Made by a program: the position numbers and the translations under genes | Source of the DNA: Piromyces finnis finn | Lineage: Eukaryota; Fungi; Neocallimastigomycota | Length of the DNA stretch: 64,000 nucleotides | Assembly: GCA_002104945.1 (NCBI GenBank) | Contig: MCFH01000037.1 | Location: 434,001-498,000 of the forward strand | Direction: 5' to 3' | Shown here: piece by piece, positions 37,717 through 46,364 of the stretch | Position numbering within the stretch: position 1 is the first letter of the stretch | Layout: each line of letters starts with the position of its first letter | Notes under the pieces: model-generated | The model's input: the letters and a program-made list of their open reading frames with translations, nothing else | Database searches by the model: none | What the model was told of the DNA's origin: nothing

Positions 37717-38823
37717 ATGTCTTTTTCAATAAGTGATTTATTAGCAGATGCTGATTTTGAGCAACCACAAATAGCTATTGCTCAAGCAAGTCAAAATGAA
37801 GATCAAGTTGCTCTTTTTGATTCAGATACAGATTTAAGTGAAGATGAAATGGAAGAATTGACCCATTCCAATAAAAACTCAGCTGAAAATCAATTTTATA
37901 TACAAGATAAGATAGACCATCCTCAATTAAATATAGTAAAGGATTCAACAATGGATTCTCTTATAGAATTACTTCAAAAGAAAGAATTTAAAAATATAAT
38001 TGTAATGACTGGTGCTGGAGTATCAACAGCTGTAGGCATTCCAGATTTTCGTTCTCCTGAAACAGGTATATACAGTAATTTAGGAAAGTTTGATCTTCCT
38101 CATCCGGAAGATATGTTTGATATTGAATATTTTCTTTATAATCCACAACCATTTTATACTGTAATGAAGGATTTATTACCAAAAAAAGTAAAACCTTCCA
38201 AAACTCATTATTTTATTCGTCTTTTAGCCGATAAAGGTATTCTTCTTCGTCATTACACTCAAAATATTGATACATTGGAAAGAGTAGCAGGTGTACCTGA
38301 AGAATTATTAGTAGAATCTCATGGTTCTTTCCATACAGCTCATTGTGTTGGTATTAAAGATAAACCAGGTTGTCGTAAAGAATATTCTAGAGAATTCATT
38401 AGAGAAAAAGTTGCTGCCCAAGAAGTACCTTATTGTACTGAATGTGGTGGTTTAGTTAAACCTGATATTGTTTTCTTTGGTGAAGAACTTCCACAAAAAT
38501 TCTTTGATTGTTATTACGAAGATTTCCAAAAATGTGATTTACTTTTAGTTTTTGGTACTTCATTAAAGGTTCAACCTTTTTGTAATTTGATCGACTTTGC
38601 TAAAATTGATACCCCTCGTTGTTTAATAAATAATAAGTTAGCAGGTGTTACTGGTCATCCAAGAAAAGGTTTTGATTTTTCAGGTTCATTTCAAAAATAC
38701 AGAAGAGATGTATTTTATAAAGGAAATTGCGATGATGGTGCTGTAATTTTAGCAAAACATATGGGATTAGAAGAGGAATTAAATGAATTGGTTAATACAA
38801 GTGAACAAGAATTATCATTTTAA
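37717..38823 (+). CDS. NAD-dependent deacylase, class I sirtuin (Hst2/SIRT2-like), intronless
   Basis: GAGVSTAVGIPDFRS, YTQNIDTLER, HGSF, Cys4 zinc site, KPDIVFFGE, GTSLKVQPF. Confidence 0.95.
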   Translation: MSFSISDLLADADFEQPQIAIAQASQNEDQVALFDSDTDLSEDEMEELTHSNKNSAENQFYIQDKIDHPQLNIVKDSTMDSLIELLQKKEFKNIIVMTGAGVSTAVGIPDFRSPETGIYSNLGKFDLPHPEDMFDIEYFLYNPQPFYTVMKDLLPKKVKPSKTHYFIRLLADKGILLRHYTQNIDTLERVAGVPEELLVESHGSFHTAHCVGIKDKPGCRKEYSREFIREKVAAQEVPYCTECGGLVKPDIVFFGEELPQKFFDCYYEDFQKCDLLLVFGTSLKVQPFCNLIDFAKIDTPRCLINNKLAGVTGHPRKGFDFSGSFQKYRRDVFYKGNCDDGAVILAKHMGLEEELNELVNTSEQELSF

Positions 38824-39179: not shown

Positions 39180-39633
39180 TTGTATAAAAAAAAACTCTTG
39201 GTAAATTTTTTAATTTTGATGATTATATAGTTGCATTTTTATTATTTTTAAATTTGTTATTTTATAATTTTTTACTTAACAATTTAGTAAAAAAAAAAAA
39301 AAAAAAAAAATTTTTTTAATAGAATTATATAATTAAAATATAATTTAGATTTCTGTTGTATTATATAAACAGGTATTCTTGGCTTATTTTGATTTTTTAT
39401 GAATAATAGAAGTGATGATTAATTATTATATTTATGATAAAAAAAGATATTAATTTTCTTTCTTTCTTTTTTTTTTTTTTTTTTTTTAATATACAGTTGA
39501 ATAGATGTTTTATTGTTGACACGATTTGTTGTTGCTTTTTTTTTTATAATTGTAATTTTAAAACTTTTAGAAATGAAATGTATTTTGTATATTTATTGGT
39601 AAATATATTTATCTATTTTGAATATTAATAGGA

Positions 39634-39738
39634 TTAATAGGAAGCTAATTCATCAATTTCATCATCAGTATAACCTAATAAATAAAGAACATTCTTTAAA
39701 CTTCTTTGGTTAATACGTGCTGGGGCCTATTGATGTTA

Positions 39739-39770
<32 letters not shown>

Positions 39771-41982
39771 AAATATTTTAATATATTATTTATTTCAAAC
39801 TATTTATTCATAATAATTCAAAATTCATCTTACTTGTTGTTGAACACGTGGTTTTGCATTAAAAGCAATACCAAGACCAGCCTTTGATAACATGAATAAA
39901 TCATTAGCACCATCACCAACAGCAATAACTTGTTCAGAAGTAACGGATTCAGCTTGAGCAATAACATCTAATAATTCGGCCTTTCTAATACCATCAACAA
40001 TTGGACCATAGGTTTCACCAGTTAAAGTTAAGCCATCCTTTGAAACTCTTAACTATAAATTAGGATAAAATATAATGTTTTGATTAATAATAATAATGAT
40101 TTAATTTTAAAACTAATAGAAATCGACTATGGTAGAATTTTTTGTACTATCCTTATTAATTATTATTATTTTTTTATCATAAAAAACTTACTTGATTAGC
40201 GAAAGCGTAATCTAAACCTAATTCATGTTTAACATAAGTAGCTAATGGCATAAAACCACCAGAAATAACAGCAAGCTTGTAACCAAGACGTTTAAGGGAT
40301 TTACAAAGGAAATGAGCACCTTCAGTAAATGTTAATACCTTTTTAATATCATCTAAAACAGAAACTGGTGTTCCCTTTAAGAGAGCTACTCTTCTTCTTA
40401 AAGATTCCTTAAAGTCAATTTCACCATTCATTGCACTAGCAGTAATTTTCTATTTTGATTCATTATTTTTATAGTTATTATATACATATTAATAATATTG
40501 ACAAATGAATAGAAAATTAAAAAAAAATAAAAAGTGTATATTATTTTGTATGTATTTTTTAGATAAAAGTAGATTATTTCTATTAAATTAATTCCATCCC
40601 CAAATTACCTATTATTATCTTTTTTTTTTTTTTTTTAATTTTATTTATAATTCTTAGTTAAAATTCTATTTACTTACAGCAACTTCATCAACGACACCAG
40701 CGTGTTTAGCAATTTCATCAATAACTTCTTGTCTAATAAGGGTTGAATCCATATCAAATACAACAAGACGCTTATTCTTACGGAAGACATTCAAGTTTTG
40801 AAGAGCGACATCGGTACCATGTTGAGCACTTAATTGGAAAAGTCTTTGACGAAGATCGTCGAAATCAAGATCATTTGGAACACTTAAACTGAAATCAATA
40901 GAGTTAAGATGTTTATCCTTACTTAAACGATTCATCTTTTCAACAGAAATCTTAGTTTCTAATAAAAGTTTAGTCCAGTCATTGAGGAATTGAGAAGTAA
41001 GTCCGTTTTGGTTGAGAACAGTAGCAGTGTATTTCAAACGATTATCATATGGAGCTTCGTCTAATAAATGTTTAATTTTTTCTCTTTCATCTTGAATTTG
41101 GAATGAAAGAACGGCATCCCATTTTCTTGCATTTTCACTTAAATGGTTGAAAATGTCAACACTTTCATCAGAAAGGCGTACTAAAACACCAAATGTAACA
41201 TTGTGATAAAGACGAGATAACATGAAATCTATAATAGTACAATTGAATTTTGCCATTGATTCTAAAACACAACCAATAATATCAGTACCATGCTTACCGG
41301 AAAGTTGAATAAGAATATTATGTTGGGGCATGATAGATGAAGGTGGAATAAAAACTTGATCTAATTTTGTAAGAATGGAAGGCATAGTGAGAAGTGGGGC
41401 ACTTTTTTCTTCTGGAGTGGTGGTAGTGTCAGTACCACTAAGTTTGTCCATTAAATTATGCTTAATAGTACTTAATTCTTCTGAATGATAAAATGGAAGA
41501 TAAACTAAACGGAACATGTAAGGTTCTGAAAGTTTTAAACCAGAATGTCTATCTAACTTTTTCATAATTTTAACAATACCAGTGTAATTTAACATAATGA
41601 ATTGTTCCAAAGTAATAATTTTCTTGAGTAAACTTTTACAAGTAACTAGATCATTTGTTTTATTAATATTTTGGTATTCTTCTGTAATACTTTTAACATT
41701 TCTATCAAAGAATCCAGAAAGTTTTTCAACTTCCTCATCCAATGTTTTTATAAAAATAGATGTATTATTTTGAAGTTTACCAAGTCTAAAACTAAGGTCA
41801 CTAGCAAAATCAAGTTCGTTATTTTCTGGTTTCCATTTCATTTTTTCTGGTGAAAAATGAATAGAATATGAAGCAATATCAGTTTTAATGTATTGTTTTA
41901 ATTTATTATAATTAATAAAATATTCCTTCCATTCTGCTGATGCTTCCTTTTGTTTTTGCAATAAATGATTACCGAATTTCAT
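39634..41982 (-). CDS. SPX-ACT-ACT-phosphoserine phosphatase (SerB-type) fusion, 4 exons, 624 aa
   Basis: Exons 41982-40678, 40449-40192, 40052-39834 and 39726-39634, all phase 0. SPX: MKFG, YFINYNKLKQYIK, NYTGIVKIMKKLD. HAD/PSP: FDMDSTL, ISGGF, AVGDGANDL, GIAFNAKP. Confidence 0.92.
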
Positions 41983-42903
41983 TTTGTTTTATATATTTTA
42001 CTTTTTCAATAAAATAAAATATATATAATAATATTTTTTTTTTAAAAAAAATAATAAAAAAAAAAAATTATTTTTAAAACTTTAGTTAATATTTAAAATA
42101 AAAAAAATGCTTTTTTAAATATAATAAAATGGTAATAAATTAAATGGTATTAATTTATGTGAAATCAACAATAATTTTAATCGATAATAAATAAAAAATA
42201 GTTTTGAAATATTTTTTTTTACGTAATTTAAGCCATAAAAGTTAGGATTCATAACTAATAAATTGATGTTAAAAATAGTATTATTATTATTATTATTATT
42301 ATTTAAAACTTATTATTTTAAAACTAATTTTTATGTAATTCTTCTTTTTCTTATTATTATTATATTAATTCTCTTATGTAATTCTTCTTATTATTATATA
42401 TACTCTTTCTATATTATATTCTTTATAATTATTTATTAATGTTCAATCAGTACAATCATGGATGATTAACATAATATTCATATTTTGAACTTTTTTAAAT
42501 TTATTCCACTTAACTAAATTTATTGATTTAATACTTCATAATCACATGTTAATTTCATATTTCAATTTATTGTGGGTTATTTTTTTTGGTATAACAAAAA
42601 ATAAAAAAAAAAATAAAATTTTATCTATAACCGTAAGCAATAACAACTATTATAACAATAATTAAAGTAAAAAAAAAAAAAAAAAAGAATTAAAACAAAC
42701 GTAGAAATAATAAACTTTTATATATAAAATAATTTATTTATAACTATGTTTTTACAAAATATTATAGATCAATATATTGGTTTCACAAATATAAATTAGA
42801 TAAAATACCAAAATTTTTATCGTCTAGTTTGTGAATGAGAAATATACATATAAAAAATAAGCTTATTATTCATATAGTCATTATTTTTTCTTCTTTCAAA
42901 TCA

Positions 42904-46364
<3,461 letters not shown>

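Follow-up and report, generated by a model that had tools for sequence, protein, structure and literature searches.

The gene at positions 39634-41982 (minus strand) of a 64,000-nucleotide (nt) stretch of the Piromyces finnis contig MCFH01000037.1 (GCA_002104945.1; hereafter, the window, to which all positions refer) raises the question of whether, and to what end, an SPX domain is joined to a phosphoserine phosphatase (PSP) of the SerB type that carries two ACT domains. Here we show that the fusion is transcribed as a single message and that SPX-PSP is the rule in every non-Dikarya fungal phylum sampled as well as in the aphelid Paraphelidium. Judging from sequence conservation and from analogy with known systems, we consider it fairly probable that these proteins represent a conserved holomycotan enzyme, SPX-linker-ACT1-ACT2-SerB HAD, in which phosphoserine hydrolysis is controlled by an SPX ligand together with ACT feedback.

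The coding sequence, including the stop codon, exactly fills the above interval and consists of four exons (1875 nt) that encode a 624-amino-acid (aa) protein. All three introns are of the GT..AG type and in phase 0, and the region is AT-rich, with a G+C content of 0.11-0.33. A 624-aa database entry (P0001) from Piromyces finnis, an anaerobic gut fungus of the Neocallimastigomycota, has a 100% identical sequence and is automatically named "phosphoserine phosphatase serb". According to the original prediction, which was made from the nucleotide sequence, a single 435-codon exon runs from SPX through two ACT-like domains into the DMDST catalytic motif. This description turned out to be exact with respect to the open reading frame (ORF), the splice donor and the Pfam matches of exon 1: the frame opens with MKFG, continues across the two ACT domains and reaches DMDST (aa 410-414, nt 40755-40741). 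A 438-aa ORF in the window is exon 1 read on into intron 1.

Public P. finnis sequencing runs contain 0.72-0.76 of the sampled words of the stretch (exonic share, 0.80). Four runs from three studies (X1-X4) were aligned to positions 39400-42200. Runs X1-X3 each yielded one contig of ~2.1 kb in which segments 39498-39725, 39833-40052, 40192-40449 and 40678-42015 are joined, with 0-2 mismatches and all three introns precisely absent; run X4 gave a contig of 1887 nt that has identical joints and 39691 as its first position. The RNA nature of the runs was guessed; the contigs lack the introns and carry canonical splice joints and are therefore mRNA-derived. Because these spliced contigs extend across the whole coding sequence, the SPX-PSP fusion is one message, and the check originally proposed, RNA-seq across exon 1, came out positive, with exon 1 joined to the downstream exons in all four runs. 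Related proteins from Neocallimastigomycota (84-93% identical) are encoded by uninterrupted full-fusion ORFs on metatranscriptome-like contigs of 1.9-2.3 kb.

Sequence comparison and structural modeling both identify the N-terminus as a genuine SPX domain whose basic ligand surface is intact. Pfam SPX (PF03105, cut-off 27.8 bits) matches exon 1 with 49 bits and the full protein with 47.1 bits, and five other members of the SPX-PSP family score 36-62 bits. A family profile of the first ~190 residues matches OsSPX1 and OsSPX2 (2.6e-21 and 3.3e-21, respectively), CtVtc4, ScVtc4, XPR1, PHO1 and Pho90. The AlphaFold model of the SPX domain alone reached a predicted local distance difference test score (pLDDT) of 90.4 and a predicted template modeling score (pTM) of 0.84. 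When this model was compared to the PDB with Foldseek, the top 50 matches were all SPX domains, with the best geometric fit to XPR1 SPX-IP8 (8tyv; template modeling (TM) score 0.75 by query and 0.83 by target). The assignment of the N-terminus to SPX in the original prediction is thus borne out by both profile and fold.

In Vtc4, the ligand site of the SPX domain comprises a phosphate-binding cluster (Y22, K26, K133) and a lysine surface cluster (K129, K132, K136) (PMC9911596). The equivalents in the Piromyces protein are Y25, K29, K142 and K138, K141, R145, respectively; five of the six residues are identical, and the sixth is a replacement of Lys with Arg (R145 vs K136). The basic residues that had been described as intact (MKFG at aa 1-4, Y25-x3-K29 and K138-x2-K141-K142) are so, and R145 extends this set. 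For 86 full-length relatives, we counted the conservation of each of these positions. K138, K141 and K142 are present in all 86, and Y25 and K29 in 84 (the remaining two rows are gaps), whereas position 145 is occupied by Arg in 77 and by Lys in nine proteins; K2 and K33 are likewise conserved. SPX is the most variable domain of the family: outside Neocallimastigomycota, the relatives share 28-45% identity with the Piromyces SPX. That surface Tyr and Lys residues are selectively kept within an otherwise variable domain therefore argues for ligand binding.

The rest of the protein aligns end to end with M. avium SerB2 (ACT1-ACT2-PSP), in agreement with the predicted likeness to the mycobacterial enzymes. 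A phmmer search of the PDB aligned aa 219-619 to aa 9-398 of M. avium SerB (MaSerB; 3p96) with an E-value of 5.6e-61, covering both ACT domains of MaSerB. The first Foldseek matches are also M. avium SerB2 entries (E 1.7e-33, TM 0.74 by target, 34% identity), and the alignment to 5it4 spans 408 columns; the high root-mean-square deviation to SerB2 fits the comparison of a modeled closed monomer with a domain-swapped crystal dimer. Beyond SPX, Pfam detects only ACT_6 (27-28.2 bits, with 28.2 on exon 1; cut-off 23) and HAD-type domains, and ACT_PSP_2 is below the cut-off here (14.5 bits). The NCBIfam serB equivalog model (TIGR00338) is matched over its entire length, positions 1-219 of 219 at aa 391-611, with 275.2 bits vs the cut-off of 144.15; exon 1 alone covers the first 44 positions of this model, and exons 2 and 3 complete it.

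The HAD domain is 48% identical to M. jannaschii PSP (MjPSP; Foldseek TM 0.91 by target). The residues of HAD motifs I-IV (D410, D412, T414; S498; K545; G567-D568-G-A-N571-D572) are all invariant in 55 relatives. E419 and R455 are invariant in the relatives as well; these are the counterparts of MjPSP E20 and R56, which we take to hold the serine moiety. From this sequence comparison, we infer that the HAD domain hydrolyses O-phospho-L-serine to serine and inorganic phosphate (Pi), which is the last, irreversible step of the phosphorylated serine pathway. The most conserved element of the ACT region is the invariant loop between strand 1 and helix 1 of ACT1, G229-x-H231-G-T-D-I235, and the ACT site looks functional. 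In the phmmer alignment to MaSerB, H231 is opposite the Asp of the mycobacterial G-V-D-Q-P-G loop. Under an assumed offset between chain and native numbering, this Asp is probably MaSerB D17, a serine contact, and L-Ser acts at the ACT1-ACT2 interface of SerB2, shifting its oligomers (PMC10564941).

The full-length AlphaFold model, built on the 55 relatives (mean pLDDT 82), contains SPX helices up to aa 182, two ACT units (aa 222-297 and 316-396), each folded as beta-alpha-beta-beta-alpha-beta, and the HAD domain at aa 406-624. In pairwise comparisons of four Neocallimastigomycota orthologues, the ratio of nonsynonymous to synonymous substitution rates (dN/dS) lies at 0.10-0.17 in SPX, at 0.05-0.06 in the ACT pair and at 0.03-0.08 in HAD; all domains are intact, and purifying selection acts on each of them.

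A word-indexed search yielded >100 proteins that combine SPX, ACT_6 and HAD, from >100 independently assembled genomes. The taxa named in this search include Neocallimastigomycota; Chytridiomycota (Rhizophlyctis, Spizellomyces, Phlyctochytrium and others); Blastocladiomycota (Paraphysoderma); Glomeromycotina (Rhizophagus, Diversispora, Ambispora, Geosiphon); Mucoromycotina (Mucor, Rhizopus, Umbelopsis, Endogone and others); Mortierellomycotina; and Zoopagomycota (Basidiobolus, Syncephalis, Thamnocephalis). An exhaustive search of 1.84 billion representative sequences, among which the three-part architecture occurs in about ten clusters at 50% identity, adds Coemansia, Smittium, Catenaria and Sorochytrium; in Paraphelidium, the fusion is intact. 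The architecture search suggested in the original prediction thus spans Aphelida, Blastocladiomycota, Chytridiomycota, Neocallimastigomycota, Zoopagomycota and Mucoromycota. That prediction had allowed for uncharacterised homologues in other early-diverging fungi; they do exist, but "possible" was too cautious a word, given that the fusion is nearly universal in the non-Dikarya phyla sampled and is also found in the ancyromonad Fabomonas.

Within Dikarya, the only members found are those of Saitoella (two species) and Neolecta, both in Taphrinomycotina. In Saitoella (P0126), Thr and Gln replace K29 and K33, and the KILKKHDR segment is kept; Neolecta (P0341) lacks the N-terminal helices and the KIxKK segment. 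Their sequences look like a snapshot of SPX loss on the way to a short Ser2-type enzyme. Degeneration of SPX was considered for the family as a whole and rejected for Piromyces and the core family; it applies to Neolecta, to one metagenomic member and, in part, to Saitoella, but to no others. Several holomycotan proteins of the same clade have no SPX, namely those of Batrachochytrium salamandrivorans, Cladochytrium, Calcarisporiella, Amoeboaphelidium and Sanchytrium, and some of these may be truncated gene models. Database entries of 430-490 aa with SPX and ACT only (P0004, P0007, P0011, P0041, P0045 and others), several of which are automatically named "glycine cleavage system regulatory protein", were rejected as an architecture of their own. 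We read them as prokaryote-style ORF calls that end in intron 1, on metagenomic fungal contigs, and they are probably misannotated.

A quick IQ-TREE phylogeny of 46 rows that covers the ACT2+HAD region unites all holomycotan sequences in one clade, with a support of 96 in the Shimodaira-Hasegawa-like approximate likelihood-ratio test (SH-aLRT). Sequences of ~400 aa form a separate clade (SH-aLRT 97), presumably bacterial, in which the sole named member is a Sericytochromatia metagenome-assembled genome and most of the others have no taxon label. ACT-ACT-SerB proteins without SPX exist in eukaryotes as well, in the red alga Galdieria and in a shorter Fabomonas isoform, and a form with two HAD domains is found in dinoflagellates and other marine protists. 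"Bacterial-style", the term applied to the phosphatase in the original prediction, is therefore imprecise, since other eukaryotes have ACT-ACT-SerB and the fungal sequences form their own clade. A recent bacterial origin of ACT-ACT-SerB was also considered and is unsupported, the holomycotan clade being separate from the mostly unlabelled ~400-aa clade and eukaryotic forms being known.

The only non-fungal SPX-PSP found comes from a single transcriptome of Fabomonas tropica, where a 622-aa isoform (P0278) contains SPX (46 bits), ACT_6, ACT_PSP_2 and HAD. The SPX motifs of this protein are canonical (YIDYKKGK and KKIVKKFDK), and its score against the fungal-family SPX model is 31 bits vs 55-240 for the fungal members. 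Fabomonas falls outside the holomycotan clade in the tree, but the approximately unbiased (AU) test does not reject uniting the two (p 0.255). The sequences fit either an ancient fusion common to both groups or two independent fusion events. The same Trinity gene gives rise to a 410-aa isoform without SPX (P0154), and this pair of isoforms could reflect an alternative start site that makes SPX control optional, or else an assembly effect.

The proteins nearest to the ACT-ACT-HAD part of the Fabomonas protein are protist proteins of ~850 aa with two HAD domains. They belong to a double-HAD family of eukaryotic proteins of 770-1660 aa (P0141, P0132, P0136, P0139, P0293, P0313 and ~30 more in MMETSP/EukProt), which comprises the closest relatives of the Fabomonas protein and includes one from the dinoflagellate Alexandrium monilatum. 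These proteins consist of ACT_6, a weak, probably degenerate HAD, ACT_PSP_2 and a strong SerB HAD, a layout that looks like an internally duplicated SerB2-type enzyme.

How does SPX-PSP relate to characterised enzymes and SPX proteins? With mycobacterial SerB2 (3p96/5is2/5jlp; M. tuberculosis SerB2), it shares ACT1-ACT2-HAD and all HAD catalytic motifs, but SerB2 has no SPX, and its ACT1 loop reads G-V-D-Q-P-G-V rather than G-x-H-G-T-D-I. M. jannaschii PSP, human PSPH (27-28% identity) and yeast Ser2 have the same catalytic domain without the ACT pair or SPX. Vtc4 (SPX-TTM polyphosphate polymerase) and Gde1 (SPX-glycerophosphodiesterase) likewise combine an N-terminal SPX that has a matching basic surface with a phosphate-metabolising enzyme, and the SPX domain described here matches those of CtVtc4, ScVtc4 and CtGde1 in both fold and profile. 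Unlike in Vtc4 and Gde1, the output is an amino-acid biosynthetic phosphatase that has an ACT regulatory pair of its own. The best SPX-profile match is to rice SPX1/SPX2 (7e40, 7d3y), with the MKFGK, YK-LK and LNYTG-KILKK-D motifs aligned; the plant proteins differ in that they consist of a single domain and target PHR transcription factors in trans.

None of the class-defining partner domains of known SPX classes (TTM/VTC, ankyrin, SLC13, EXS, GDPD, MFS, RING) is present in the Piromyces protein, and its SPX is not stand-alone. Because only ACT_6 and HAD-type domains follow SPX, the protein lies outside the VTC, Pho81, Pho87/90/91, Syg1/XPR1/PHO1, Gde1, SPX-MFS, SPX-RING and stand-alone classes. 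We know of no SPX-ACT-phosphoserine phosphatase combination in the yeast and plant SPX inventories. No paper on an SPX-PSP fusion, and none that brings up SPX, an ACT domain and phosphoserine phosphatase jointly, was found in ~8.4 million full texts, in which subscription journals are thinly covered, such that a mention there is possible; within this scope, the original statement that no characterised example is known stands. SPX-PSP thus appears to be an unstudied class of SPX proteins that adds a third kind of SPX-enzyme fusion to those represented by Vtc4 and Gde1. The sequences themselves are not new: they are already in public databases, under automatic names only.

In the mechanism that we favor, the Tyr/Lys surface of SPX would, by analogy, bind the inositol pyrophosphates (PP-InsP) InsP7/InsP8, which are the cellular read-out of phosphate status, and the ligand-bound SPX would then act via the flexible linker on the ACT-ACT-PSP core, altering its activity or its oligomeric state. 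The ACT pair, like that of mycobacterial SerB2, would mediate feedback by an amino acid, probably serine. In this way, Pi release and serine/one-carbon supply would be coupled to phosphate status as well as to the level of serine. That InsP7/InsP8 and serine are regulators is what we infer from the characterised homologues; for the SPX effect, the sequence is compatible with activation as well as with inhibition by PP-InsP. Serine is an input to the synthesis of one-carbon units and nucleotides, which is a large sink for phosphorus. The final step of serine synthesis has been counted among the major Pi-releasing 'source' reactions that stem from glucose metabolism, and such reactions are predicted to respond to Pi limitation (PMC7864628).

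Several points weigh against this mechanism. The full-length AlphaFold model has no confident interface between SPX and the core (pTM 0.57; linker pLDDT <50). Position 145 of the lysine cluster is Arg in most members, although this change is conservative and Lys is kept in 9 of the 86. In the ACT1 loop, G-x-H-G-T-D-I stands where the mycobacterial enzymes have G-V-D-Q-P-G-V, and the ACT pair may therefore respond to a ligand other than serine. Finally, given the SPX-less holomycotan lineages and most Dikarya, SPX control appears to be dispensable, unless some of the gene models are truncated.

Four other explanations have to be weighed against this mechanism. SPX could be a PP-InsP-dependent protein-interaction module that recruits the phosphatase to a partner or turns the enzyme into a component of phosphate-response signalling. 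This explanation draws on the long disordered linker between SPX and the core and on the best profile matches, stand-alone rice SPX1/SPX2, which act by binding PHR2 (7e40 and 7d3y are SPX-PHR2 complexes). There is, however, no known partner, and retention of the covalent link throughout the early-diverging fungal phyla points to the attached enzyme itself as the target; in addition, Vtc4 and Gde1 are thought to be regulated in cis (PMC9911596). We therefore rate an interaction module as unlikely. A structural role of SPX (oligomerisation, stability or localisation) without sensing, in an otherwise ordinary housekeeping PSP with ACT feedback, seems less plausible still. Such a role would be compatible with the position of SPX as the least conserved domain, with dN/dS two to four times that of HAD, and with its loss or decay in several lineages (K29 and K33 in Saitoella, the KIxKK segment in Neolecta). 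Nevertheless, the residues that are invariant across the 86 proteins are exactly the InsP6/PP-InsP contacts in solved SPX domains, and selective conservation of surface Tyr and Lys is not what a purely structural role would produce.

The HAD substrate might also not be phosphoserine, being instead an inositol pyrophosphate or another phospho-metabolite that SPX binds or presents. HAD phosphatases are often promiscuous, and a PP-InsP-binding SPX beside a phosphatase is suggestive; the score against the SerB equivalog (275 vs 144 bits), the identity to MjPSP and the retention of E419 and R455 nonetheless make this highly improbable, and no other PSP candidate turned up in these fungi, although whole genomes were not searched. 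Nothing speaks for the last alternative, that a gene-model or assembly artefact joined two neighbouring genes. The original prediction had rejected it, and it is refuted by the uninterrupted exon from SPX to HAD motif I, the spliced transcripts that span the coding sequence and the same architecture in >100 independently assembled genomes, so that we consider an artefact next to impossible. Control of phosphoserine hydrolysis by an SPX ligand and ACT feedback remains the explanation that we prefer.

The features of the gene are compiled in the table below. Its neighbours in the window are a single-exon gene for a 368-aa Sir2-family deacetylase (37717-38823, plus strand; Pfam SIR2, 203 bits), which is convergent on the 3' end of SPX-PSP, with ~670 nt between its stop codon and the SPX-PSP mRNA end (39498), and, upstream of SPX-PSP, two ORF pieces at 43340-44266 (minus strand), likely one gene, with a zinc finger of the C1 (phorbol-ester/DAG) type (42 bits) and, below threshold, the beginning of an SH3 domain. 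The adjoining sirtuin and C1/SH3 genes provide no functional context for SPX-PSP.

Table. Features of the SPX-PSP gene, with positions in the 64,000-nt window
Feature	Position	Strand	Description
Spliced mRNA extent	39498..42015	-	from transcript contigs; 5' untranslated region of 33 nt, 3' untranslated region of 136 nt
Exon 1	40678..41982	-	1305 nt = 435 codons; SPX, linker, ACT1, ACT2, HAD motif I; ATG start, GTAAGT donor at 40677
Intron 1	40450..40677	-	228 nt, GT..AG, phase 0; joint 40449/40678 found in all four runs
Exon 2	40192..40449	-	86 codons; HAD cap and motif II; serB model positions 46-131
Intron 2	40053..40191	-	139 nt, GT..AG, phase 0; joint 40052/40192 found in all four runs
Exon 3	39834..40052	-	73 codons; HAD motifs III and IV (GDGAND)
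Intron 3	39727..39833	-	107 nt, GT..AG, phase 0; contigs unbroken across it; joint ambiguous by 1 nt
Exon 4	39634..39726	-	30 codons and TAA stop
SPX domain	41431..41982	-	aa 1-184; Pfam SPX, family profile, SPX-only model
Y25...K29 in NYNKLK	41896..41910	-	first two residues of the predicted phosphate-binding cluster; equivalent to Vtc4 Y22, K26
K138-I-M-K141-K142-L-D-R145 (VKIMKK)	41548..41571	-	basic cluster of SPX helix 4; K-x2-K-K-x2-K as in Vtc4 K129, K132, K133, K136
Disordered linker	41338..41430	-	aa 185-215; AlphaFold pLDDT <50 at aa 185-211
ACT1	41092..41319	-	aa 222-297; beta-alpha-beta-beta-alpha-beta; Pfam ACT_6
ACT2	40795..41037	-	aa 316-396; phmmer to MaSerB, predicted ACT fold, Foldseek to M. 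avium SerB2
SerB-type HAD phosphatase domain	39637..40782, introns included	-	aa 401-624; end of exon 1 to exon 4
HAD motif I, D410-M-D412-S-T414	40741..40755	-	nucleophile and acid/base aspartates; invariant in 55 relatives

As an evolutionary extension of the favored mechanism, we tentatively suggest, with less than even confidence, that SPX-PSP served the holomycotan ancestor, and possibly older lineages in view of Fabomonas, as an effector of inositol-pyrophosphate signalling: a valve, gated by PP-InsP, on the last, Pi-releasing step of serine synthesis, through which serine flux, one-carbon flux and Pi recycling would directly follow phosphate status. It would then have been lost in animals and in nearly all Dikarya. 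Such losses would explain why standard model fungi never revealed SPX-PSP. Had the Fabomonas fusion arisen independently, the same coupling would have been invented twice.

The well-studied SPX proteins (transporters, VTC, Pho81, Gde1, plant SPX/PHR, NLA) all, to our knowledge, move, store or sense phosphate. Placed on an enzyme of amino-acid biosynthesis, an SPX domain would give inositol-pyrophosphate signalling a direct metabolic output, in a family that is present in Mucorales pathogens, in arbuscular mycorrhizal fungi, for which phosphate handling is central, and in rumen fungi, but not in animals or plants. SPX-PSP could also show how SPX communicates with a soluble enzyme that is already under ACT-based allostery, and would offer a simple, purifiable system for testing the link between serine synthesis and phosphate balance that has been proposed on theoretical grounds (PMC7864628).

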